From: Entomortierella parvispora E1425
Lineage: Eukaryota; Fungi; Mortierellomycota
Assembly: GCA_020891255.1 (NCBI GenBank)
Contig: BQFW01000014.1
Span: forward strand, 1,798,001-1,862,000
DNA length: 64,000 bases
Direction of reading: 5' to 3'
Positions 26,352 through 43,900 of this stretch are shown here, piece by piece. Positions within the stretch are counted from its first letter, which is position 1. Each line of letters begins with the position of its first letter. Position numbers and translations under genes: made by a program. The notes under the pieces are model-generated. The model made no database searches. It was not told the origin of the DNA and was given only the letters and a program-made list of their open reading frames with translations.

Positions 26352-29300
26352 TTACGACCAATATCTGCTCCTTGTCGCCGAGGGGACCCAGTTGCTCGTC
26401 TGACCACTATCCCATTGCTGCTGGGCCCCGGGTACTTTCTCTTTTTCTCGGCTTAGGTTGTCATAGAAGGTAATCACCTTTTGGTGCACCATCACCTTGC
26501 TTGGATGGAAATTCAGTACTTGAAGACCCTCAAGACATGTGGCTCGCGACATTGCCACGTAGGCTTGACCTAGAATGGTAGGACATATTCACCGGTCATT
26601 TTAGTATCGCAGTCGTTCGCATCAAATAACAGCGTGCGTGATAGAGAGAGATAGAGAGGAAGGAGAAAGATTTACCTTTTTCAAAGACCTTGCCGAGGTC
26701 CACACGGACTTTTGGCAACGTCTGTCCTTGAGCCTTGTGAATACTCAGGGACCAGGCCAGGCAAAGTGGAATCTGTGTCCTCTTTGCAATCACTTCACCA
26801 CCCGGCATCTCCATCGTCCACTCCTCTCGTCCTACTACCATATGCCGTGTCCGCCCTCCCTCCATCACAAACCTGACGCGGGGAAGCAACTCGCCGTGGC
26901 TGTTCAGAGATGGCAAGGCCTGGCCGCTTGGAGTTTTCCGAAAATTGTCGGACCGTTGAGGGGTGAATTCGACCACAATACCAATGCTGCCGTTGACCAA
27001 TCCTCCTTGCCCTCCATGCAGGTTCCTGAGAAGCATCACTTGGGCCCCCACCTTGAGTTCCAGTTTTGTCGGCGCAATGCAATGCTGTTCCAACTTTTCC
27101 TTCTGTGGCCCATAATCCTCAGCCTCAAAGAAAAGACTTTCAGACGTCAATGCATTCAGTTCCGAAGCATTCGCCTCTTCAACTTGTCTGCGGAGAGGGA
27201 ATCTAGTAGCAGGTAGAATATCGTGAGCTCGTGCATCCTGAAGTAGTTTTGTTCTTATATACCCTACATGGTAGTCATCTTTTCGACTTACAGCTCCGTG
27301 GGTTTTAGTCCATCCGTTTCTGGCAAGTCTCGTGTCAAATTGAGAAACTGCTCAATTGTTGGGTGTTGCATCTGTCCGATGCGCGCCTCATTCAACATTC
27401 TTGCAAAAGCTAGAAGCATATTGTTAGGTACGGGTCAGTTGGATAATTTTGTCTTGCCTTTTTTTTTGTCTTGTGCAAGAAATTGTCTTTCAGAAGAGAT
27501 GGCTTACTCGGATCCTTTTGACGAAACACCTGCTCCAGTTGAATGTTAGTATGGATATATGACTTCCAGGACTCGGCTTCGAAACAAAACTGGATCGATC
27601 TCTTTGCAACAGGGGGAAGCTGAAAAAAATCCCCTGTTAGAACGATCTGGAGACCTCCCCAGGCTTCTTCCTCTTCGTTGGGAACTTGTCGGACTTTCCG
27701 TGCAATCGCCTCCAATTTGTCTAGAAGGACAGCGTCAATCATGGACACCTCATCGATGATAAGCACTCTTGTATGTCTCCAGCGCCTTTTAGTTTTCTTA
27801 CTCGAGAGCACCTTTTTAGTCAGCTGCTCCACCGTGTCATTGCCTAACCCAATCCCGGCAAAGGAATGAAGTGTACAGCCCCCAATATTGCACGCTGCGA
27901 TGCCGGTCGAAGCTGTCACTGCCACCTTCTCAGCTCCTATGCTATCCCAGAAATATGTGTCGGGTGGCGTCTGGCGACTGTACTTTTCTCGTAGTCGTAC
28001 AATGAGCTCACGCAGAAGAACAGATTTTCCTGTGCCCGCTGATCCAGTGAAGAAGACACTCTTGTTGTGCGTGACAACCTGGTCAAGCACGTAAAGTTGC
28101 TCCGGTGACAGCGCCAATCCATCGGCGGTTTTAGTTGGATCCGGTGGATCCATCTCAAACTTGATGAAGTCGTCCCCTTCAGTATCGATTTTGTATGAGA
28201 GCGGCAAATCCTCTCTTGAGTGCTGTAAATTGTTCTCAGATTTACATCCCGATGGCGCAACTTCCGCTACCTCCTGGACAACCTCGGACGATGACGAGGA
28301 AGAACCCCAAATCATTCCGCTTGATTTGTCGAGCAAGCTCTGACTCTGAGAAGCCGGACTTTCTAGGCTGGCCTTGCCTCCTTGCTTTGAATGTGCTAGG
28401 CTTTCCTCTAACTTTTGTTTATGAGATGGAGCGAGTCGAGGGTCAATGCTATTTCCTTGCCTTGGCAACGACGGACTCTCCCCTAGGTTCTGTTTCAGAG
28501 ATGGTCCAAGGTTGGAGCTGGCCTCCTTTCCTTGCCTTATCAGCGAAAGAATTTCTTGCAACCTTTGTCCCTGAGAAGGCACAGCTCCAAGGCTGACGTC
28601 GCTCCCTTGTCTTGGTAGTGACGGGCCCTCTCCCAACTTCTGGCTCAGGGAAGGTACGAGTCCAAGGCTAATGTCACTTCTTTGTCTTGACAGTGCCAAA
28701 CCCTCTCCCAACGTTTGACCCTGATTAGGTGCAGGTCCAACGCTAACATCGCTTCCTTGCTTTGACAGTGACGGACTTTCTGTTTGTCTCTGCCTCTCAA
28801 GAGATTCCCGTTGCCTCTGAAATTCTTCCTTTTCTCTCTTAAATTCTTCTTTTTGCCATTCAAGGTCCTTCCTGAGACTCTCAAGGTCTTCCCGCTGCCT
28901 CTCAAATTCTTCCCGGAGCAGTTGTTGGTCTCGCTGTAACTGCTGCAATTGCGAAACGGGCACCAAGAGGCCACAACAGGCTGATGAAGAGCTGGCGACT
29001 GTGCTTTCACTGGTTAGCATGTGGAGTAACCGTTGGTCTCGCTGCAACTGCTGCAGCCGCGAAGCTGACACCGAAAAGCCATCAGAGGTCGATGAAGAGC
29101 TAGCGACTGTGCTCTCATTGGATGGCCTGACCTCCGCGGTTTGCTTAGGCCCTGTTCCTGGGGTCTTGTAGTGGCGTTGAAGGGTATTATTGCGAAGTTG
29201 GGAGTCGGTTCTGTAGACCCCTTCTAATGACTGTATACCAGCCTCTCCGTCATTGCCGTCGCTATCCAGCTCGACCGGGAAGCGCTGTGAACCTTCCCCA

Positions 29301-29977
29301 AACGAGGGACGGGTTGGTTTTTCCTGATCCAATTGCTCCAGATCTGCCTTTCTCTTTCCTAGTAGCCTGGAAGTGCCTTTGATGTAAACGACGATGGTAT
29401 TAGCGTCCTTTGGACCTTGATTCGAGACTTCCACTGGGATATTTTCCAAAAATTCGCCTTCGGCTAAAGCCGTATCCTTCAGCTCCGAGTCTGATGGGTC
29501 ATTTTCATCCAGCTCAGGGTCGTCCAAGTCGCTCTCGGGAATAACGTTTCTGTCGTAAAGATCGGATGGGATATAGTCGCTTAGGTACTCATCGTCGACA
29601 ATACTTTCCAGCAAGGCATCGTCAAAGTTGTCCTGCCAGGAAGGAGTTTGGGAGAGGATCTCATCCTCTTCAAAGTCACTTAGTTGATCCAAATACCCGT
29701 CTTCTGCGGGCATGGCGTTCCACAAGGCGGTGGATGTCATGACTGGTTCTGGAAGGTCTCCTCCAAAGTCGTCATCCGAAAAGACGTCCCTGTCGAGCTG
29801 CTGGCCGTCCAAAGGGTTGTTTGAGGCACCCGCGCCATCCACCTCCCTCTGATGCCCATGCACACTCTCTGCAGAGGTCAGATTTCCGGCACCATTGCTA
29901 GAACTCTTGAGTGTCTGATGCGATTGCTGTTCTTGTTGCTGCTGTTGCCCCTGAGGTTTCGATTGCACGCTGAGCAT
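26352..29977 (-). CDS. PIF1: PIF1-family 5'-3' DNA helicase, copy 1 (4 coding exons)
   Basis: Motifs [77 protein letters not shown] and YVAMSRAT. Exons 29977-27508, 27409-27292, 27202-26676, 26569-26352 splice in frame at GT-AG sites. Confidence 0.93.
28330..28780 (-). repeat. 75-bp (25-aa) coding minisatellite, ~6 units, in the PIF1 copy 1 N-terminus
   Basis: [25 protein letters not shown] / [25 protein letters not shown] / [25 protein letters not shown] and further units. Confidence 0.85.
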
Positions 29978-30356
29978 GGTGGCAGACGACAGCTGCGGAT
30001 GTATTGGTAGTCTTGATGATTGTCACTTTGCTCCTGAATACCGAGACGACGCCTGACCCGGGGTCTCAGAGGGGTATAGGTACGCTTCGAGTTCTCGTCA
30101 CAACTGCTAGATAGAAAGGTGGACATGGTTAGGCCAAACTGCGTTGTCAGGTACCCGATTGTACTTCTAAGGAAAGAAGGGAGGAGCATGCATTCTTCTT
30201 GACATGCTTTCTCATTGTGCCCTGAGTTGACCCCTGCAAGGTCCATTCCAGGTCGAGAGGTCTTTTCGATGCACGGTCTTGGCTTTAATACCTTTGGTAC
30301 GTGGGATGTGGTTCAAGGGTGACAGTCTACAGGACGTGTTTCTATTGACCGTAGGC

Positions 30357-30470
30357 ACGCGTCCTCGGAGTGAAAAGTGGCGAGGGAGCACGGCCGCGAT
30401 GAGATGAAAAAGGAGGGGTGGATGGAAGGGCGGTAGTGATGGCCCTTCTGCAATGGTATTAATCAATTGA
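30357..30470. promoter_or_regulatory. PIF1 copy 1 upstream motifs: ACGCGT (MCB-like) and ATTAATCAATTGA
   Basis: ACGCGT at 30357-30362 and ATTAATCAATTGA at 30458-30470. The 13-mer recurs upstream of copies 2 and 3; ACGCGT recurs in copy 2 and as TCGCGT in copy 3. Confidence 0.45.
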
Positions 30471-30663
30471 GCCTTGACTGCACTGAATGACGGACAGGCA
30501 GAGAGGTATGGCCAATGGCAATGGCAATGGCGCTGGGAAAGGGTGAAGGACAAAAAGGAACGGAGGAAAGAGAGAAAAAGTTGCGCCACCAATGCTCGGG
30601 ACTCTGATTAAAACCCAGCTCCGATTTGTTATGATTTGTGCCGAGGCAATGTGGCTTTGTGCT

Positions 30664-30808
30664 GGGGTTTTTGTAGGGTTGATGTAGGGTTTTATAGGGT
30701 TAAAGTAGGGTTTTGTAGGGTTTTTTAGGGTTTCTGCTGAGAAGATATGGTTTTCTACTGGGGTTTTTGTGGGTTTTTGTGGGGTTTTTTTTGTGGGTTT
30801 TTGAGGAG
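30664..30808 (+). repeat. Degenerate telomere-like (TAGGGTT) G-tract array
   Basis: Seven GGG tracts with ~10-11-bp period at 30664-30730, then four more T-rich/GGG units. Confidence 0.75.
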
Positions 30809-31019
30809 TTCAAAAAACAGAGTGGCGCCTTCCAAGAATAATGACTGACCTCAGTTCATGGTCTTCCTCCCTCAAGGTACATGTTGCATTTCACCGTCTC
30901 CTCCCTCATGGTGCAATGCACATCAACCCCGTGACCAAGGAGCGTTCATTCCCGGACTTTTTTCAAAGTGAAATGGCACGTCTATAGCACCAACAGCGAA
31001 AAGGCATTGTTATTAATTG

Positions 31020-31615
31020 GTCAAACTGTTCAGGCACGCTGCAAAAGTCCTGGATGGTGGCCGAGGGATTATTGAACCTGTAGGTAAGGAGGACCCTGCC
31101 GAAGGACTTTGGGGGCGCCTTTCAGGAAGCACGATGTGGTGGCCTGTTCGAGGGTATGGCGAGACTCGACGGTCACGTCGTGAGGGTACAAGAAGGACAA
31201 GTCCTTGCGAGTGCGCACTTTGATATCGAACAACATATTGCACACCTGGTCGATAAAGCCGGCAGACTGCGGACGGCTTTGGCAAAGTCATCCCAGTAGG
31301 CGTCATCTGAGAAAGCATTACCTTCCCACCACAGCATGGCATCTCCGGTGAGGAACATTGGCTGCATGCAGAGTGCACTCGTTGTCGGGGATGCTTCGGT
31401 TGGGGGAAGCGGAAGGTGGGGGATGAAAAGAGGCTAGGAACAAGGGACTGGTGGGCAAGGGCCTGGTTGGTGGTCAGAGGTTGGAAAAGGGTTGTCAGGG
31501 GAAGTCATGGAGAGGCTGTGATGGGGTGTCATTGGTGTCGGAGGCGTTAGTAAGGACAGGCGGGGTCAAGGGTCAGGATCTAGGGTCAGAGGTCAGGGGA
31601 CCGAGGGTCCTTGCA
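31020..31615 (-). mobile_element. Degenerate Ty3/gypsy gag (Retrotrans_gag-like) remnant, copy A
   Basis: Frameshifted fragments MFLTGDAMLWWEG...YWDDFAKA, GFIDQVCNMLFDI and FLKGAPKVLRQ resemble capsid-region gag motifs. No pol seen. Confidence 0.7.
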
Positions 31616-31678
31616 ATAGTAAAGTGGAGACAAGAAGTGATGTTTATTCTAGTGCTCGATACTGGGATGATTCGTGGC

Positions 31679-32176
31679 CTACAGTGGTCTATCATACCCA
31701 TAGTCATATTCTTCACAATCCTCTGGCAGTTTTTTAGCTATTTCGCATCTATCGGAGCGACTATCTTCGGCACAAAGGTCGCGGACGTTGGTACACATGA
31801 TCCCGCAAGCATCCTCAGATTTCTTACACAGCTCTAGGAGGTCGCTTATAGGAGCAGCCTTGGCACACTCACGGGCTGCAGCGCGACATGATACAGGTTG
31901 GTTAGGTCCGCAAGCACGGAGATAAGCATCACAGTTTTTAGCATTGAGCTTCTGTTGTTCTGCAGCGGTGAACGGTCTGCAGCAATAGCAACCAACAGTG
32001 TGGCCAGGCACCGTGTCGTATGATTGCTCCCATCCGCTAGGGCAAGTCGCGAATGCCCCCTCGCAATGTTTGCAGCATCGGTTAGCTGAAGTGAAGCAGC
32101 CGGGGACCTGGGCCGCAACACACTGGATGACGACGAGAATCACGCAGGTGATGGTGAAAATATAGCTTGCTTTCAT
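31679..32176 (-). CDS. Small secreted cysteine-rich protein SSP-A (165 aa; 18 Cys in the mature part), family unknown to me
   Basis: 22-aa signal peptide ending CVAA/Q. TATATAAA at 32556-32549, a 5'-UTR intron 32281-32178 (GTAAGG...CAG) and AATAAA ~30 nt after the stop. All of these are conserved in the paralogue. Confidence 0.88.
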   Translation of the reverse strand: MKASYIFTITCVILVVIQCVAAQVPGCFTSANRCCKHCEGAFATCPSGWEQSYDTVPGHTVGCYCCRPFTAAEQQKLNAKNCDAYLRACGPNQPVSCRAAARECAKAAPISDLLELCKKSEDACGIMCTNVRDLCAEDSRSDRCEIAKKLPEDCEEYDYGYDRPL

Positions 32177-32644
32177 TCTGTTGATAATAAATAGCTTCTA
32201 GAATGGAGAGCAGAAAGAGTAGTTAAGGGTAGTACTATTATTCCTCAATGGTCACCATGACTACTCTAGATGCAGCCTTACTTGAAGTGACCCAAGATGT
32301 GGTTGGTTGAGAAAGAAGTTACGACGTTCTTGATAGCGTCCGTGGTGCTCTTGCCGCGGTTCTGTGAGGGAGACGTTCGTTTGACAGCTTCTGCGACGGT
32401 TCTTGTGATGATACCGGGCAATGGTCCTTCTAGTGGCTGTTGGGAGTGCTGGTAGTGTTGTTGGGAGTGCTGGTAGTGTTGTTGTGAGTAGTGCGTTGGA
32501 GTGAGATCAGATGTGTGTTCGTGCAGTATGACAAGTACGCGTGCCTTCTTTATATACTCAAGGAGAGTCAGAATGGGGATGATTTGTCATTTGGGTGTGG
32601 AGTAAGAATACAAAACAGCAAAGACATCTCTGTAACGGAAAACG

Positions 32645-32790
32645 GAGGCAGGGAAGAGTGAGAGCAGGGAAGAGTGAGGGCAGGGAAGAGTGAGGGCAGG
32701 GAAGAGTGAGGGCAGGGAATATTTAGGGCAAGGGCAGGGAAGATCTGGGGCAAGGGAAGGGAAAAGAAAGGGGAGCGAAAAGGAAGGGCA
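32645..32790 (+). repeat. G-rich 16-bp minisatellite (GGGCAGGGAAGAGTGA)n and variants; G-quadruplex motif
   Basis: About 4 near-perfect units followed by GGGcaaGGGcaGGGaagatctGGGGcaaGGGaaGGG. Confidence 0.85.
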
Positions 32791-33656
32791 GGGAAACATA
32801 AAGGGTAAGGAAAAGAAAAAAAAGAAAGGGCGGCAACGTAGTGGCGGCGGGGAAAGCAGGGGCAGGAAAAGTGGAGACAATACGAAATTGAGGGTGTCTC
32901 AAAGGGGGGAGTTGGAGAACAGGGTTGGTTAAACAGGACAACAATAATAAGCAGGTGCAGCAAGCACCGGGGTAACCATAAGGACAAGGAGATAGGAAAA
33001 GGAAAGAGATGGAAATAGTCATCAGTTACAATAAACATCCACACTTTTGAACACGCGCATTCACAGAAGGGAGAAAAAGGTCTTTACGTGTATGCCATCA
33101 CATGGGTTCATTCCTAGTCATGTCATTGGAGAGGAGCTGAACAATATGGTGCTCAACTGGCTAACCGACTTGCTGTTGATATGCTGGTCGGAATGCAGAG
33201 GTTTTGTCGGAAAGGGCAATGGTAGCCAGTGCGAAATCATCGAACAAAAAAGATACAAGTTGTAAGTCATTTTGGTGGCGCTCATTCCACACCGCGTGGC
33301 GTGCGCACGGTGCACACGCGACTGGACTGTGTCCTGCGGATGCATACGTCCGTCCATGGAAAGAGCATCCTCATGCCATGATTCACTACGACATCACGAG
33401 CAGCTGTATACCAATTCGTACCCCAAACCTACTCGCCATTCCAGAGCTGCTGCAGGTAAAGTCGATTTTTCATTCGGAAATGTCTATTATAAGGGAAAAA
33501 AAGACAGACAAAACTGACTCGTAGACTAAAAGACGATAAGAAGATGAATGAAAAATGAATGATGTATTGTACGATGATTATGAAATGATTGAAAAGAGAA
33601 GGGGGAATACACAGGGACGGTAAGGTTTGCGCCCTGTCAGGATTGTCAGATTATGA

Positions 33657-36600
33657 TCATGATCGACGGCTGCTGAAGGTTGCAAACGCCTGGTCACCAT
33701 TAGCCTGCGATTGGGTCGTGAGAGCTCGCTCCTTTTCTCGGCGTAGGTTCTCGTAGAAGGTAACCACCTTTGGGTGGACCATCACCTTGTATGGACTGAA
33801 ATTCAGAACTTGAAGACCTTCAAGGTTTGTAGCTCGAGACAGTGCTACGTAGGCTTGCCCTAGATTGGCACAAGGAGAGAATTCATAAACTATTTAGTTA
33901 CTGTCAAGTCCAATCAACATATCAATCTCCAGGGAAGGTCGTTGATAGAGTAGGCAGCCTATCCAGAGGAAAAACTTACCTTTTTCAAAGACTTTGGTCA
34001 GATCAACACGGACTTTCGGTAACGTCTGCCCTTGAGCCTTATGAATGCTCAGTGACCATGCCAGGCAGAGCGGAATTTGTATCCTCCTGGCGACGACCTT
34101 TCCATCTGGCAGCTCCATGGACCATTCCTCGCGCCCCACTATCATGTGTTGCTCTTCTCCTCCCTCCAACACAAACTTGACACGGGGAAGCATCTCGTCT
34201 GGTTTGTTCAGCGATGGCAAGCGCTTACCGTTCGAGCCCCTCCGAACATTATCGGCCTCCATGCGGGTAAAGGAGACCACGATACCGATACTACCGTTGA
34301 CCAGTCCCCCTTTTCCTCCACTTTGGTTCCTGAGGAGCATCACCTGAGCCCCTACTTTGATCTCTAGCTTTGTTGGCGCAATGCACTGCTGTTCCAACTT
34401 GTCCTTTTGCTTCCCACTGTCCTTGGCTTTGAAGAAAAAACTTTCTGAAGTCAATGCAAGCAGTTCTGCAGCATTCGCTTCATCAACTTGTTTGCGAAGA
34501 GGAAATCTAATAAAACAAACAAGAAAGCCGTCAGTGCATGGCTCACAAACGGTTTGTTTCCATATAGTAATGTGCAATGGCCATTCTTTCGACTTACAGC
34601 TCCGTAGGCTTCAGTCCGTCCGCTTCTGGCAAGGGTCGCGTCAAATTTTGGAACTGTTCAATTGTCGAGTTTCGCATTTCTCCGACGCGCACTTCATTCA
34701 GCATGCTCGCAAAGGCTGTGAAAAATGTCAGGTTAAAATTGGCTGACAATCCCCTTGTTTTTTGAAAACTCGCTAGAAAAAAAAAGGTAACTTACTGTGA
34801 TCCTTTTGTCGAAATACCTGCTCCAGTTGAATAGTGGTATGGATGGTTGACTTCCAGGAATCGGCCTCGAAACAAAACCGAGCCGTTCCATTCTTGTCAA
34901 CGGGAGGAAGCTGGAAAAAGTCCCCTGTTAGAACGATTTGGAGTCCTCCCCAAATCTTTTCCACTTGATCAGGCTTTGTTCGGATCTTCCGTGCGATCGT
35001 CTCCAATTTGTCCAGAAGGACAGCGTCAATCATGGATACCTCATCCACGATGAGAACACATGCCTTTCTCCAGCGTTCTGCAGTTTTACTAAAGCGCACC
35101 TTTTCGATCAACTCTTCCACCTTTTCGTTCCCTAGTCCTATCCCGGCAAAGGAATGAAGTGTGCAGCCTCCAATGTTGCATGCCGCAATGCCTGTTGAGG
35201 CAGTCACCGCCACCCTTTCTACGGATTTTGCATTCGAGTATTCTGGCTCAGGCGGTACCCAATGAATGTACTTTTGCCGTAATCGCACAATGAGTTCACG
35301 CAGAAGGACCGACTTTCCTGTACCCGCTGATCCAGTGAAGAAGAGACTCTTGTTGTGCGTGACGACCTGGTCTAGCACAAAAAGTTGGTCCGATGATAGC
35401 GTCAGTCCATCGGCGGTTTTGGTGGGATCTGGTGGGTTTATCTCTGGCTTAATGGTGTCGCTCTCTTCAGCCTCATTTTCGTAAGGGGAGGACGAATGTT
35501 CGCTAGCGTGTGGTGAACTATACTCAGATTTACATCCTGATGGCGTAACTTCCGCCGCCTCCTGGGCGACCTCGGACGATGACGACGCAGAGCCCCAAAT
35601 CATTCCTCTCGATTTGTCGAGTAGGCTCTGGCTCTGAGAAAGCGCACTTTCAACGATGGTGCTGCATCCTTGCCTTGACTGCGACGGACTCTTTCCTAAC
35701 TTTTGTTGCGGAGATGGTCCAAGGTTGGAGCTGACGTCGCTTCCTTGCCTTGCCAGCGACCGATTTTCCTGCAACCTCTGTTCCTGAGAAGGCACAGCTC
35801 CAAGGCTGATGTCGCTCCCTTGTCTAGGTAGTGACGGGCCCTCTCCCAACTTCTGGCTCAGGGAAGGTACGAGTCCAAGGTTAATGTCTCTTCTTTGTCT
35901 TGACAGTGCCAAACCCTCTCCCAACGTTTGACCCTGATTAGGTGCAGGTCCAACGCTAACATCGCTTCCTTGCTTTGACAGTGACGGACTTTCTGTTTGT
36001 CTCTGCCTCTCAAGAGATTCCCGTTGCCTCTGAAATTCTTCCTTTTCTCTCTTAAATTCTTCTTTTTGCCATTCAAGGTCCTTCCTGAGACTCTCAAGGT
36101 CTTCCCGCTGCCTCTCAAATTCTTCCCGGAGCAGTTGTTGGTCTCGCTGCAATTGCTGCAATTGCGAAGCGGACACCAAGAGGCCACAACAGGCTGATGA
36201 AGAGCTGGCGACTGTGTTTTCGCTGGTTAGCATGTGGAGTATTCGTTGGTCTCGCTGCAACTGCTGCAACTGCGAAGCTGACACCGAAAAGCCATCAGAG
36301 GTCGATGAAGAGCTAGCGACTGTGCTCTCATTGGATGGCCTGACCTCCGCGGTTTGCTTAGGCCCTGTTCCTGGGGTCTTGTAGTGGCGTTGAAAGGTAT
36401 TGTTGCGACGTTGAGGGGCTGTTCTGTAGACCCCTTCTAAGGGTTGTATACCAGCCTCTCCATCATTGCCATCGCTATCCAGCTCGACCGGGAAGCGCTG
36501 TGAACCTTCCCCAAACGAGGGACGGGTTGGTTTTTCCTGATCCAATTGTTCCAGATTTGCCTTTCTCTTTCCTAGTAGCCTGGAAGTGCCTTTGGCGTAG

Positions 36601-37190
36601 ACGATGATGGAATTAGCGTTCTTTGGACCTTGATTCGAGACTTCCACGGGGACATTTTCCAAAAATTCGCCTTCAGCTAAAGCTGTATCCTTCAACTCCG
36701 AGTCTGATGGGTCATTTTCATCCAGCTCAGGGTCATCCAAGTCGCTCTCGGGAATAACGTTTCTGTCGTAAAGCTCGGATGGGATATCGTCGCTTAGGTA
36801 CTCTTCGTCGACAATACTTTCCAGCAAGGTGTCGTCAAAGTTGTCCTGCCAGGAAGGAGTTTGGGAGAGGATCTCATCCTCTTCAAAGTCACTTAGTTGA
36901 TCCAAATACCCGTCTTCTGCGGGCATGGCGTTCCACAAGGCGGTGGATGTCATGACTGGTTCTGGAAGGTCGCCTCCAAAGTCGTCATCCGAAAAGACGT
37001 CCCTGTCGAGCTGCTGGCCGTCCAAAGGGTTGTTTGAGGCACCCGCGCCATCCACCTCCCTCTGATGCCCATGCACACTCTCTGCAGAGGTCAGATTTCC
37101 GGCACCATTGCTAGAACTCTTGAGTGTCTGATGCGATTGCTGTTCTTGTTGCTGCTGTTGCCCCTGTGGCCTCGATTGCACGCTGAGCAT
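33657..37190 (-). CDS. PIF1: PIF1-family DNA helicase, copy 2 (4 coding exons)
   Basis: Same motif set and same three intron positions as copy 1; [10 protein letters not shown]; C-terminus ...FSSRRS then TGA at 33659-33657. Confidence 0.92.
35610..35995 (-). repeat. 75-bp (25-aa) coding minisatellite, ~5 units, in PIF1 copy 2
   Basis: Same xSRQGSxxSLGxxPSxxQxLxE unit as copy 1, one unit fewer. Confidence 0.82.
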
Positions 37191-37861
37191 GGTGGCAGAC
37201 GACAGCTGTGAATGTATTGGTAGTCTTGATGATTGTCACTTTGCTCCTGAATACCGAGACGACGCCTGACCCGGGGTCTCAGAGGGGTATAGGTACGCTT
37301 CGGGTTCTCGTCACAACTGCTAGATAGAAAGGTGGACATGGTTAGGCCAAACTGCGTTGTCAGGTACCCGATTGTACTTCTAAGGAAAGAAGGGAGGAGC
37401 ATGCATTCTTCTTGACATGCTTTCTCATTGTGCCCTGAGTTGACCCCTGCAAGGTCCATTCCAGGTCGAGAGGTCTTTTCGATGCATAGTCATGGCTTTA
37501 ATACCTTTGGTACGTGGGATGTGGTTCAAGGGTGACAGTCTGCAGGACGTGTTTCTGTTAATCGTGGGCACGCGTCCACGGAATGAAATGTGGCGAGGGT
37601 GCACGGCAGAGATGAGAGATGAAAAAGGAGGGGTGGATGGAAGCGCGTGGTAATGGCCCTTCTGCAATGGTATTAATCAATTGAGCCTTGACTGTACTGA
37701 ATGATGGACAGGCAGACAGAGTGGCCAATGGCAATGGCACTGGCACTGGGAAAGGGTGAAGAGGAAAGAGAAAAAAAGGTTGCGCCACCAATGGTCGGGA
37801 CTCTGATTAAAACCCAGATCCGATTGTTATGATTTGTGCCGAGGCAATGTGGCCTTGTGCT

Positions 37862-37962
37862 GGGGTTTTTGTGGGTTGATATAGGGTGTTGCAGGGTTAT
37901 TTAGGGTTTCTGCTGAGAAGATATGGTTTTCTACTGGGGTTTTTTATGGTTTTTTGAGGGGT
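37862..37962 (+). repeat. Telomere-like G-tract array, shorter copy
   Basis: GGGGtttttgtGGGttgatataGGGtgttgcaGGGttatttaGGG, homologous to 30664-30808. Confidence 0.7.
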
Positions 37963-37984
37963 TCAAAAAACAGAGTGGCTCCTT

Positions 37985-38394
37985 GCGAGTGCGCACAATG
38001 TAGTCCGACATCGTGGAGGTCACGATATCGAACAACATACCGCACACCTTGTCGATAAAGCCGGCAGGCTGTGGAAGACTTTGACAAAGTCATCCCAGTG
38101 GGCGTCATCCGAGAGAGCGTTGCCTTCCCACAACAGCGTGGCATCCCCGGTGAGGAACATGGCTGCATGCAGAGTGCGCTCGTTGTCGGGATGCTCCGGT
38201 TGGGGGAAGCGAAAGATGGTGGATGAAAAGAGGCTAGGAGCAAGTTGCTGGTGGGCAAGGGCCTGGTTGGCGATCAGAGGTCGGAGATGGGTTGTGTCAA
38301 TGGGGTCAGGGGGCGTTGGTGAGGACAGGTGGGGCCAAGGGTCAGCATCTAGGGTCAGAGGTCAGGGGATCGAGGGTCCTTTGCTACCATGCAA
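37985..38394 (-). mobile_element. Degenerate Ty3/gypsy gag remnant, copy B, with putative LTR end (TTGCA) and PBS (TGGTAGC)
   Basis: PDNERTLHAAMFLTGDATLLWEG...HWDDFVK and GFIDKVCGMLFDIVTSTMSDYIVRTRK. On the minus strand TATTGCA|TGGTAGC lies at 38396-38383. Confidence 0.72.
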
Positions 38395-38460
38395 TATGAG
38401 TACTGGGGACTAAGTGAGACTAACTTTATTCTAGTGCTCGATACTAAGATGAATTGTGGA

Positions 38461-38964
38461 CTAAATACCTAGAGTTCCAAAATCAGTGAGATCTGGACGA
38501 GTACATGGCTCAGGCAGATTTTTGGCTATTTCGCATCGATCAGAGCGACTATCTTCCTTGCAAAAGTTGCGGACGTTGGTACACATGATTTTGCAATATC
38601 TCTCAGATTTCTCGCACAGCTTTAGGAGGTCGCTTCTAGGAGCAGTCTTGGCACACGTGTATGCTGCAAGGTTACAGGATACAGGCTGGTTAGGACCGCA
38701 AGCACTAAGATAAGCACCACAGTTTTTAGCATCGAGCTGCTGTTGTTCTGCAGCGGTGAAGGGTCTGCAGCAATAGCAAACTGGAGGATGGCCATCCACC
38801 TCCTCATGTGACTGAACCCATCCACCAGGGCAAGTCCCGAATGCCCCTTCGCAATATTTGCAGCATTGTTCCTCTGAAGTGAAGCAGCCGGGGACCTGGG
38901 CCGCAACACACTGGATGACGACGAGAATCAGGGACGTGATGGTGAAAATATGGCTTGCTTTCAT
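38461..38964 (-). CDS. Small secreted cysteine-rich protein SSP-B (167 aa; 18 Cys), paralogue of SSP-A
   Basis: All 18 mature Cys align with SSP-A. TATATAAA at 39292-39285 and 5'-UTR intron 39065-38966. Confidence 0.88.
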   Translation of the reverse strand: MKASHIFTITSLILVVIQCVAAQVPGCFTSEEQCCKYCEGAFGTCPGGWVQSHEEVDGHPPVCYCCRPFTAAEQQQLDAKNCGAYLSACGPNQPVSCNLAAYTCAKTAPRSDLLKLCEKSERYCKIMCTNVRNFCKEDSRSDRCEIAKNLPEPCTRPDLTDFGTLGI

Positions 38965-39379
38965 TCTGTTGATAATAGCTTCTAGAATAGAGAACAGAAA
39001 GAACAGTTAAGAGCAGTACTATTATTCCTTAATGGTCACCATGACTACTCTAGATGCAGCCTTACTTGAAGTGACCCAAGATGTGGTTGGATGAGGAAGA
39101 GATTACAGTCTGAAAATCTTCTCGAATTCGTTCTCGTGACGTTCTTGATAGCGTCCGTGGTTTTGTTTGACAGCGTCTGTGCGGCTCTTACGATGGTACC
39201 TGGTAATGGTCTTTCTAGTGGTTGTTGGAAGTGTTGGGAGTGTTGCTGTGAGGAGTTTAGTGTGGCAGGTACGCGTGCCTTTTCTTTATATACTCAAGGA
39301 GAGTCAGAGTGGGGATGACTTGTCATTTGGGTTTGGAGCAAGAATACGAAACAAAGAGATATCTCTATAACGGAACAAC

Positions 39380-39460
39380 GGGGGCAGGGAAGAGTGGGGG
39401 TAGGGAAGATCTAGGACAAGGGCAGGGAAGATCTAGGACAAGGGCAGGGAAGATCAAGGC
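39380..39460 (+). repeat. G-rich ~21-bp minisatellite (AAGGGCAGGGAAGATCTAGGAC-type)
   Basis: Homologous position to 32645-32790, but a different unit has been amplified. Confidence 0.75.
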
Positions 39461-40237
39461 AAAGGAAGGGAAAAGAAAGGGGAGCGAAAAGAGGAGGCAG
39501 AGAAACAGAAAGGGCAGGGAAAAGGAAGGACATAGTAGGGGCGTGGAAAGCAAGGGCAAGGAAAAGGAGGGACAACACCAGTGCGAGACACAAATAGAAA
39601 TCTAGGGCGAGTTGACAGCAAGCCTGACAAATAAAGAACGAGATTGGCTAAAAGGGTAACAAACAAAGAGTCGCGAGGAAGCACCAATACGGAGGAAGGG
39701 GGCAGCCATAAGGACAAGGAGATAGGAAATAAACAGAACATCCGACTTGGAACTGTTGGTTGTTGCTCACAGAGGGGAGTGGGGAAAAAGGTCTTTCGCT
39801 GAGCAAATGCCGCCATATGAGCTCATTCCTGGTCATGTCCATGGAGAAGAGCAGAACAATGGGTGGCGTGCGCACGGTGCACAATCGACTGGACTGTGCC
39901 CTGTGGACGTATCCGTCCATCCACCCATGGAAAGAGCACCCCCCCCCCCCATGCCTTGATTCACCACGACTTCACGAGCAACTGTACACCAACTCGTCCC
40001 TCAAATCCTGCTGCAGGTATCGTCCTGATTTTCGTTCGGAGAAAAAAAAAATTAAAGCGACTCAGAAAGAAGGAAAAAAAGACAGACCTGACTGACTCGT
40101 AGACAAAAGGACGATAGGAAGATGAATGAAAAATGAATGATGTATTGTACAATGATTACGAAATGATATGAAAAGAGAGAGGGGGGAATACACAGGGACG
40201 GTGGTGTTTGCGCCCTGTCAGGGATGTCAGATTATGA

Positions 40238-43200
40238 TCACGATCGACGGCTGCTGCTGGCTGCAGACGCCTGGTCACCATTAGCCTGCGATTGGGACGC
40301 GAGAGCTCGCTCCTTTTCTCGGCATAGGTTCTCGTAAAAGGTAACCACCTTTGGATGCACCATCACTTTTTGTGGATGGAAGTTGAGGACTTGAAGACCC
40401 TCCAGACTGGTGGCTCGCGACAGTGCCACATAGGCTTGTCCTAAAATGACACATGAGAATACATCATATACATGTCAGTTCCAAGTCGAAGTAAACACCA
40501 TCTCGTGTCTTTGCAGGGTTCTTATCAAGGTGGACCATTCTTTGTGTATACGTGAGAAGGGAAGGAGGTCGGTATTTACCTTTTTCAAAGACCTTGGCTA
40601 GATCCACACGGACCTTTGTCAATGTTTGGCCTTGGGCCTTGTGGATACTCAGGGACCAGGCCAGGCAGAGTGGGATCTGTACCCTCCGGGCGACCACTTC
40701 ACCGTCCGGCAACTCCATAGACCATTCTTCTCGTCCTACAACCATCTCGCTAGAGCGCCCTCCCTCCAACATGAACCTGATGCGGGGAAGTAACTCGCCA
40801 TAGCTGTTTAGCGATGGCAAGGGCTTATCATCCGAACCTAGCCGCACATTATCGGCCGGTCTGCGGGTGTATTCGACCACAATACCGATGCTGCCATTGA
40901 CCAGCCCTCCGATGCCTCCATTTTGGTTCCTGAGCAGCATCACTTGAGCCCCCACCTTGAGCTCCAGTTTTGTCGGCGCAACGCACTGCTGTTCCAACTT
41001 TTCCTTTTGTGGGCCACTATCCCTGGCCACAAAGAAAAGACTTTCAGAAGTCAATGCACGAAGCTCCGCACCATTGGCCTCTTCAACCTGTCTGCGAAGA
41101 GGAAATCTAATAAAAGTAGAAGACATACGTCAGCACTCGTTCGCACCACGGTACTGAGCAAAAGTCAAAGACTGACTTGACGACGCCCGTGTCTTTCGAC
41201 TTACAGATCTGTAGGTTTTAGTCCGTCCGCTTCTGGCAAGGGTCGCGTCAAAATTTGAAATCGTTCAATCGTCGAGTGTTGCATCTGGCCAATGCGCACC
41301 TCATTCAGCATGTCCGCGAAAGCTATAGTCATATAATTAAAAATTGGATGAGAATCACTCTGTTTTGCAAAAAAAAAAAAAAAAAAAAAAAGGCGAAAAG
41401 TCATCGGAAAGAAGGCAACCTACTCTGGTCTTTTTGTCGAAAGACCTGTTCTAGTTGGATGGTGACATGAATGGACGACTTCCAAGATGCAGCTTCGAAA
41501 CAAAATCGAGCCTTCCCGCTCTTGTCCACGGGAGGAAGCTGAAAAAAATCCCCTGTTAAAACGACTTGGAGACCTCCCCAAGCTTCCATGGGCCTCTTCC
41601 GGACAGACCGAGCAATTGCCTCCAATTTGTCCAAAAGGACAGCGTCGACCATGGACACCTCATCTACGATTAGGACACAAGCCTTTCGCCAACGGCCCAC
41701 GGTCTTCCTGCTCGAGTACACCTTTCTGATCAGCACGTCTTCCTGTTCGTTGCCCAATCCAATCCCGGCAAAAGAATGAAGGGTGCAGCCTCCAATGTTG
41801 CATGCAGCAATGCCAGTCGAAGCTGTCACCGCGACCTTTTCTGCTGCTGTCGAATCCCAGTAATTTCTACCAGGTGGTGCCCAACGGCTATACTTCTGTC
41901 GTAGTCGTACAATAAGTTCACGAAGAAGGACAGACTTTCCTGTGCCCGCTGATCCAGTAAAGAAAACGCTCCTGTTGTGCGTGACGACCTGATCCAATAC
42001 GAAAAGCTGGTCTGGTGATAACGTCAGTCCCTCAGCGGTCTTTGTTGGATCTGGTGGTGTCATCCTTGGCCTGAGAGGGTCGTCTTCTTCATCTTCAACT
42101 TCGTATGGGGGTGGTGGATCCTCGTCAGAGTACCGTGAGCTAGCGTCCGATGTATATCCTAATGGCGCGTTTTGTGGAGCTATTTCAGGCGATAGCGAAC
42201 CAGTACCCCAAATCATTCCGCCAGATTGGTCGGGCAAGTCCTGGCTCTGGGAAGGCGTGCGTCCAAGACTGATTTCACTCCCTTGCCTGGACATTGGCTG
42301 ACTCATCGTTGACTCTGGTCTCGTAGAGTTTTCTTTTCTTTGTTGTCGGTATCGATATAGACGTTCAATATTGGTCAAGCGGTCTTGAGAGGTTGATGAC
42401 GAGCTGGCGGCCGCACTTTCACCGCTGGATGGTACCTCTATAACTTGTTGAAGCTCCGTTTTTGAGGTGCTATTGTGAGACGGTGGGGCGCTTTCGTGGA
42501 TTTCTTTAAATGCCAGTAGATCAATATCTTCGCCATAGTCATCGCTGTCGAGCTCGACCGGGAAACGCTGTGAGCCCTCTCCGAAAGAAGGATGTACAGG
42601 CTTTTGCCGATGCAATGGCTCTGGCTCTGCTTTCCTCTTTCCAAGCACTACACTGGATGGCCCAGGAGCAGTATTGTCGTCGGCGTCAATGACAATAACG
42701 TCCTTTTGGTTCTGATCCGTGACTTTCGTCGGGGTGTCTTCCAAAAACTCGTCATCGGCGAAGGCTGCTTCAATGAGCTCGACGACAGATGGATCTTCAT
42801 CGAGCTCAATGCCAAAGTCACCTGTGGGAGCAGTGCTGCTGTCATGGACTTGGGACGACGTGATCTCGTCGCTTAGATATTCTTCGTCGGCAATGCTTTC
42901 TAACAAGGCATCGTCAAAGTTGTCCTGAAGGTCCTTCGAATCTGATGTTTGGGAGGCGATGTCATCCTCTCCAAAGTCGCTCAGGTGATCCATGTAGTCG
43001 TCTTCAGCAGGTAGTGCGTTCCAGAGAGTGGTGGATGTCAGGACTGAGTCTGGAAGATCGTCTCCAAAGCCGTCGTCCGAATAAAGATCGCTATCAAGAT
43101 GCTCCTTGGCATCCAAGAAGGTATCTGAATCGCCGTCGTCGTCATCCTCCTCCTCCTCCTCCTGGCGTTCTTGCTCGATTGCTACAGTCTCCACATTTTC

Positions 43201-43553
43201 GGCATCAAGGCTTGAACTCCCGGATGACTGCTGCTCCTGCGCCTGCTGCTGGTTCAAGTGAGCGCTAAGCATAGGCGGAAGACCACAGCCCTCAATGTAC
43301 TGGTATGTCTCGCCGTTGATCACCACGTCCTTGAACACGGAACTGGTGCTTTCACGGTCGGTTCCAGACACGCCTGGAGTTTCTGGCACTGTTATGTTGG
43401 TGACAGAACAGGAGGGGCATGGTTAGTTTCTTGTCAATATGCTTTCAAAGGAAAGGAAAGGAAACATAGTTTCTCATTCTCTCTCATTATACCCGGGGCT
43501 GATCCTTGTGAGGTCCATTCCTGGGTCGAAGTGTCTTTTCGATTCGACGCCAT
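40238..43553 (-). CDS. PIF1: PIF1-family DNA helicase, copy 3 (5 coding exons including an upstream exon)
   Basis: All helicase motifs intact. Short exon 1 (43553-43493, [20 protein letters not shown]) splices in frame through a GT donor, CTAAC branch site and CAG acceptor into the large exon at ~43389. Confidence 0.92.
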
Positions 43554-43796
43554 GACATTAGTACCTTTGTCAATTTCACAGTGGACAGGGAATGTGGTCC
43601 AAGGATGGCAGTTTTGTGGTGAGTTCTTGTTGAGGACGCTGGCGTGGGCACGCAGAGGTCCGAGGGTGTGGACGAGAAATCGCGTCCTCGGAGTGGTGTG
43701 GCAAGGGTGCACTGAGGAGATGGGCGACGAAGTGGGGACGGGGAATGGAGTGGTAGCAGCCTCTTGCAGGAGCATTAATCAATTGATCCTTGGCTG

Positions 43797-43900
43797 GACT
43801 GACTGACTGACTGACTGATTGAATGAATGATTGACTGACGGACAAGGACAGGGTAAAGGGAACAAAGGGAACAGAGGGAACAGAAGGGAACAAAGGAAGG
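43797..43900 (+). repeat. (GACT)n microsatellite followed by GGGAACA(A/G)A repeats (canonical G4 motif)
   Basis: gactgactgact... then GGGtaaaGGGaacaaaGGGaacagaGGGaacagaaGGG. Confidence 0.75.

Follow-up and report, generated by a model that had tools for sequence, protein, structure and literature searches.

The 64,000-nucleotide stretch of the Entomortierella parvispora E1425 genome analysed here (contig BQFW01000014.1, positions 1,798,001 to 1,862,000; referred to as the window) was found to carry two copies, A and B, of a gene encoding a small, cysteine-rich protein with a predicted signal peptide. The family to which they belong appears, from the searches presented below, to be undescribed, with no name among described proteins and no sequence or fold relative. 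Judging from the members recovered, it is patchily distributed, being found in Mortierellaceae, in the springtail Folsomia candida and in other lineages, including one at 20% GC. As to its role, there is about an even chance that the protein is a secreted, disulfide-locked binding scaffold whose target is a different organism or molecules of that organism, acting as an effector, a defence protein, an inhibitor or a toxin-like protein.

The two genes were annotated as follows, with positions counted within the window:

31679-32176, minus strand: coding sequence of copy A, a single exon of 165 amino acids (aa) plus stop, with an intact frame according to the list of open reading frames (ORFs) and the translation
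32111-32176, minus strand: predicted signal peptide of copy A, residues 1-22, with a hydrophobic core and V-A-A ahead of Q23
31973-32110, minus strand: predicted N-terminal beta module of copy A, residues 23-68, with 8 Cys
31715-31972, minus strand: predicted helical module of copy A, residues 69-154, with 10 Cys and four C-x6-C pairs
31682-31714, minus strand: variable, acidic, Tyr-rich C-terminal tail of copy A, residues 155-165, unalignable between the copies and with a predicted local distance difference test (pLDDT) score < 50
32548-32556, minus strand: TATA box of copy A, TATATAAAG, invariant across four loci
32198-32281, minus strand: putative 5'-leader intron of copy A, 84 nt, with a GTAAGG donor, a CTTAACT branch-like site and a TAG acceptor
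31643-31648, minus strand: AATAAA of copy A, 31 nt past the stop codon
38461-38964, minus strand: coding sequence of copy B, 167 aa plus stop, a tblastn paralogue 73-75% identical to copy A
39284-39292, minus strand: TATA box of copy B, TATATAAAG, the same element as in copy A
38982-39065, minus strand: putative leader intron of copy B, GT..AG, 84 nt, with CTTAACT, matching copy A
38425-38430, minus strand: AATAAA of copy B, matching copy A

The mature part of copy A contained 18 Cys in 143 aa (12.6%). Their spacings (6,0,2,6,17,1,0 in the N-terminal module, 15 between the modules and 6,7,6,12,6,3,6,8,9 in the helical module) agreed exactly, for both modules, with those given in an initial annotation made from the letters of this DNA alone. 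The mean Kyte-Doolittle hydropathy of residues 5-20 was 2.5, compared with -0.5 for the remainder, and the N-terminus, like the residues at -3 and -1, fits a predicted cleavable signal peptide. The mature protein was acidic, with an isoelectric point (pI) of 5.2-5.4 and a net charge of -3 to -6. No N-glycosylation sites, Ser/Thr-rich stalk or hydrophobic C-terminus of the glycosylphosphatidylinositol (GPI) type were found in the protein sequences, and no conserved His or catalytic-looking residues were found among the family members. When the complete 38.9 Mb assembly was searched in six frames, no copies other than these two emerged.

The closest named relative was a hypothetical protein of Linnemannia elongata (166 aa, 66% identical, annotated as a single exon) and a fourth close sequence was the Mortierellaceae-like protein P0014 (locus L020). 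All 18 Cys were invariant in these four sequences, which shared 61-75% identity. Indels in the coding region were all multiples of three and confined to the vicinity of the C-terminus, whereas the upstream indels were 4, 21, 31 and 49 nt long, i.e., not restricted to multiples of three. Given this difference and the invariant Cys, the gene pattern is not explained by chance. The pairwise ratio of nonsynonymous to synonymous divergence (dN/dS, Nei-Gojobori) was 0.52-0.69 with a dS of ~0.31 in every pair, and dN was below dS by the Fisher test for copy B and L. elongata (p = 0.007) and for copies A and B (p = 0.05). As the frames and Cys were kept and dN stayed below dS despite a dS of ~0.31, copies A and B were considered old and maintained. 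On this comparative evidence, both ORFs are intact, single-exon genes, and they are real genes, as had been argued from the sequence alone.

The TATA box, the GT..AG interval in the 5' untranslated region and the AATAAA reported earlier for both copies were all located at equivalent positions. The TATA box and the putative intron were conserved in all four loci, and the intron, 89-92% identical, had an invariant donor, branch-like site and acceptor. The AATAAA was common to copies A and B only and was not conserved in L. elongata or L020. A longer frame running through the leader was considered and rejected. An ORF in the leader stops at the putative splice donor. Copy A alone has it in frame with the ATG; in copy B, L. 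elongata and L020 a 4-nt indel disrupts the frame, and the other leader indels are not in threes either. Since its frame was broken by indels outside copy A, the leader was read as non-coding. The Logan contigs with relatives ran colinear with genomic DNA and were therefore uninformative on splicing.

The divergence between the genes was unevenly distributed along their length. The promoter, leader and putative intron were 87-88% identical in all three comparisons among copy A, copy B and L. elongata, and the signal peptide was 94% identical between copies A and B. The mature coding region was 78% identical between copies A and B and 78-83% identical over the pairwise comparisons. The Fisher test of upstream DNA versus the mature region gave p = 1e-4 for copies A and B, 7e-4 for copy A and L. 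elongata and 0.08 for copy B and L. elongata. By these measures the regulatory and untranslated DNA of the gene is changing more slowly than the mature peptide, whose Cys frame nevertheless stays constant. A fast mature region under conserved signal and untranslated DNA is typical of venom and effector genes. Conotoxins and snake phospholipase A2 are alike in this respect, also in having an invariant Cys frame and tandem paralogues; they differ in that dN/dS here was 0.5-0.7, not > 1, and in that the protein here is larger and acidic. The possibility that the upstream region is a dispersed repeat was rejected, since a DNA search of the own genome gave only the two copies and CT-rich low-complexity matches.

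The extent of the family was determined with HMMER, using a profile from three mature sequences against 1.84 billion proteins; the search was local and independent of protein length and so covered fragments and fusions. It gave 12 proteins at E < 1e-3 and two profile word searches brought more, resulting in a total of ~25 distant relatives with 23-39% identity. With the exception of one fragment of a close relative, the HMMER alignments covered profile positions 2-113. The conserved core comprised ~100 aa, from C27 to about C128. Residues C45, C65, C82, C89, C97, C104, R67 and E73 were invariant across the 25 sequences, and C27, C38, C63, T70, S96 and C117 were conserved in at least 90% of them. 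The family was provisionally defined by C27, C38, C45, C63, C65, C82, C89, C97 and C104 together with R67 and E73 in the core motif, and every listed position was present in both copies A and B. A signal-peptide-like N-terminus was seen in the fungal members and in the members of an AT-rich clade described below.

The initial annotation had described a two-domain, 18-Cys family, and this description had to be revised. The beta module and the first helices occurred together in all of the ~25 distant relatives, and the best-conserved motif, C-Y/F-C-x-R-P-F/Y-T-x-x-E, spans the proposed boundary between the two modules, which contradicts the division into two domains. In some clades the number of Cys in the N-terminal module was odd, implying a disulfide between the modules. 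We read the two modules, from these alignments, as one disulfide-linked unit and not as independent domains. The 18 Cys were kept in the four Mortierellaceae-type sequences, but only ~11-12 were shared family-wide, and the CC pairs were not found in the distant relatives. The count of 18 is, by this comparison, a Mortierellaceae elaboration, the extra residues being one of C34/C35, C66, C124, C135 and C154. Nor was the family restricted to the fungus, as members were also found in F. candida and further lineages. In one relative, P0003 (L005:455-1246; 40% GC), the core was preceded by 150 fused N-terminal residues made up of additional short repeats rich in Cys, in which the only Pfam match was a weak, sub-threshold, spider-toxin-like one (E = 0.17).

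Searches against known families and folds were performed on several levels. Pfam revealed no shared family, either for the two window proteins, at E up to 10, or for 25 members of the family. Among PDB sequences, neither the single sequence nor a profile of 16 sequences had a match at a threshold as loose as E = 10, and the ESM Atlas gave no usable match. Foldseek and VIA-align returned background scores only, for the whole model and for the N-terminal module alone. No paper on the family, on DUF7410 (see below) or on the F. candida member Fcan01_00023 was found in the literature. The earlier view of an unrecognised family was upheld by the lack of a confident match in Pfam, the PDB, Foldseek and VIA-align.

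The AlphaFold2 model built on the 16-sequence alignment had a mean pLDDT of 75.9, with predicted strands at residues 33-37, 50-52 and 64-68 and predicted helices at residues 71-87, 94-107, 110-119, 121-137 and 142-149. Within these helices lay C82, C97, C104, C117, C124, C128, C135 and C144, and the model placed the C-x6-C pairs in the helical region, consistent with the helices previously suspected behind the i/i+7 Cys spacing. Every family member kept the pairs C82-x6-C89 and C97-x6-C104. We propose that C82-C104 and C89-C97 form a disulfide-stapled antiparallel hairpin, analogous to twin-CxnC hairpins. Two Cys pairs in fixed helical register on consecutive helices are also a feature of CHCH proteins (twin-Cx9C) and plant alpha-hairpinins (Cx3C...Cx3C). 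The spacing here is 6, not 9 or 3, and, in contrast to CHCH proteins, the protein is predicted to be secreted and not mitochondrial, and the proposed hairpin would be part of a larger unit that also contains a beta module. Neither the sequence nor the fold searches gave a match to either group, and the likeness is one of analogy rather than homology.

Based on these data, the following course of events may be proposed. An old tandem duplication, jointly with a PIF1-like helicase gene, would have produced the two copies, each of which has a separate TATA promoter and, probably, an intron in its leader. Up to nine disulfides would lock the small, predicted secreted protein into a compact unit in which a beta module lies against a helical bundle, the core of the latter being the hairpin that two C-x6-C pairs would staple. 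Outside the cell, the protein would work as a stable binding scaffold, with the Cys frame fixed and the exposed residues changing fast. An outward role was favoured because of the predicted secretion, the rigid Cys frame, the fast change of non-Cys positions, the tandem copies and the patchy occurrence in soil organisms of different kingdoms. A lytic cationic peptide or an enzyme is disfavoured by the acidic pI and by the fact that neither His nor residues of catalytic appearance are conserved.

Several points weigh against such a scaffold directed at other organisms. The AlphaFold2 models were built on 16-25 sequences, and pairwise dN/dS is below 1, hence the divergence pattern is, at the level of these comparisons, no proof of positive selection. 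The acidic pI of 5.2-5.4 argues against a membrane-active antimicrobial action, being unlike that of most such peptides. Moreover, proteins of the wall, the spore or development may be found among orphan secreted Cys-rich proteins, too.

The last point leads to the main alternative, a self-directed role as a wall, spore-surface or hyphal-coat component or as a developmental or mating signal, which we consider unlikely but still of some weight. Like hydrophobins and CFEM proteins, the protein is Cys-rich, small and predicted to be secreted. The strong conservation of promoter, leader and intron across species suggests tight regulation, and with its acidic pI the protein is a poor fit for a lytic peptide. 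The resemblance to hydrophobins and CFEM proteins extends to the predicted signal peptide, the many conserved Cys, the lineage-restricted distribution and the tandem duplication. Against this role, no Pfam match at E up to 10 was found to hydrophobins (PF01185, PF06766) or to CFEM (PF05730), and no CFEM structure appeared among the Foldseek and VIA-align matches. The order of Cys in hydrophobins is C-CC-C-C-CC-C, whereas in the N-terminal module it was C-CC-C-C-C-CC, and the hydrophobin barrel differs from the mixed fold predicted here, a beta module with a five-helix bundle. The protein also lacked the Ser/Thr-rich stalk, GPI-type C-terminus and N-glycosylation sites, its mature part evolves faster than the flanks, and its springtail members are hard to square with a fungus-specific wall function.

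The springtail member Fcan01_00023, identified in a profile word search, lies among animal genes on a 28.5 Mb scaffold (LNIX01000001.1), flanked by a cytochrome P450 gene and zinc-finger genes, and a contig with another relative mapped to this locus at 100% identity. At least three tandem paralogues were found within 13 kb in Folsomia by tblastn (L031:1690-14070), and tandem duplication was seen in each lineage with visible context. The Folsomia signal peptide was encoded by a separate upstream exon (L007:601-660), the exons being read individually and not joined; the annotated Fcan01_00023 apparently does not include this exon. According to the F. candida genome paper, 809 genes were acquired horizontally, and for 87 of these the best match was in Mucoromycota (Rhizophagus) (PMC5490193); Fcan01_00023 was absent from the supplementary files of that paper that were examined.

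The contigs of the AT-rich clade were 1.1-1.5 kb long with 19-20% GC, each containing one ORF and ~750 bp of non-coding DNA, and their ends overlapped by k-1 bases. One unit of 1179 bp (L014-L019) was recovered as identical rotations in six of the six samples read, and that of L006 was 1224 bp long. A JGI metagenome contig from a different assembler (L029) had a 127-nt terminal overlap, giving a 1307-bp unit. As assembled, these AT-rich units (1.18-1.31 kb) would be small DNA circles or else tandem arrays of perfect homogeneity. No Pfam domains were found in ORFs neighbouring the AT-rich and other relatives, and pattern scans of IMG/VR and JGI metagenome contigs for such relatives gave nothing.

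It is tempting to see here a horizontally mobile secreted family that has passed between springtails feeding on fungi and soil fungi of the Mortierellaceae or other Mucoromycota, in either direction, and that is carried in a third host at 20% GC on single-gene circular replicons of 1.2-1.3 kb and representing a new fold in soil inter-kingdom conflict; this extended picture is speculative and, in our estimate, quite improbable. In the maximum-likelihood tree the Mortierellaceae, the Folsomia (support 98/97) and the 12 AT-rich sequences each formed a clade, separate from one another and from two further relatives that paired together; the deep nodes of the tree were unresolved, so that it shows neither transfer nor its direction. 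Orphan secreted Cys-rich proteins are common in fungi, and the gene alone is therefore unsurprising. The family stands out by having no described sequence or fold relative, by being common to a fungus and an arthropod that encounter each other in the soil, by a mature peptide that outpaces its own regulatory DNA and by the occurrence of one lineage on tiny circular or perfectly tandem units. It could provide a new disulfide-rich scaffold and a concrete case in which soil fungi and the animals grazing on them exchange genes and are in chemical conflict.

There is a slim chance that the family belongs to a known disulfide-rich fold or family but has diverged so strongly that the tools used missed it. 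The N-terminal module had no structural match to a solved member of the defensins, knottins or other small beta toxins, in line with the misfit to defensin spacing noted in the initial annotation. One candidate family, DUF7410 (PF24166), was matched by the L. elongata protein only, with 21.2 bits over 16 residues at CYCCRPFT against a cut-off of 27.5. This match was judged to be due to chance, as it concerned one of 25 members, the window loci had none, and the matching control genomes were prokaryotic (Haloferax, Methanosarcina, Caulobacter).

Both genes lie within a larger repeated structure:

26352-43900, minus strand: tandem repeat with units of 6.6-7.3 kb, three PIF1-like helicase genes and both cysteine-rich protein genes between them, defined by direct-repeat families and Pfam

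Direct-repeat families 6.6-7.3 kb apart, with 66-94% identity, surrounded the two genes, and PF05970 matches (E ~1e-40) in three ORFs identified PIF1-like helicases. Pfam assigned no domain to their ~600 N-terminal residues, a Helitron Rep domain was not detected, and tblastn revealed no third gene copy next to helicase 3. PIF1 family expansions (52 and 28 members) were noted in the F. candida genome paper (PMC5490193). The location of the ORFs inside a 7-kb tandem unit with helicases, in a transposon-rich region, raised the question of whether they are non-functional passengers of the repeat, open by chance. This is very improbable, since at a dS of ~0.31 both copies keep their frames and 18 Cys with dN < dS, and the promoter that belongs to the gene, far from being a genomic repeat, is conserved between species. 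The homology between the window and L. elongata spanned only ~1.3 kb (~800 bp upstream and the coding sequence), with no synteny outside this gene unit. In neither L. elongata nor Folsomia was a helicase present within 10 kb of the gene, which speaks against the passenger reading and led us to reject a helicase travelling together with the gene as well. The least credible alternative, a metal- or redox-active protein using its thiols for binding instead of disulfides, would account for the very high Cys content (12.6%), but the predicted signal peptide points to the oxidising secretory pathway, the heptad-register Cys on predicted helices fit structural staples, and neither the His/Cys clusters that usually mark metal sites nor a metal-binding domain in Pfam were found.

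The L. elongata orthologue has a Crinkler-domain gene (PF20147; L003:19934-20501) and an F-box-like gene as neighbours at a distance of no more than 10 kb. In the window, a CT-rich array with a 16-nt period was located directly upstream of the conserved promoter of each copy (32652-32824 for copy A and 39372-39533 for copy B), and low-complexity stretches resembling it were present elsewhere in the genome.
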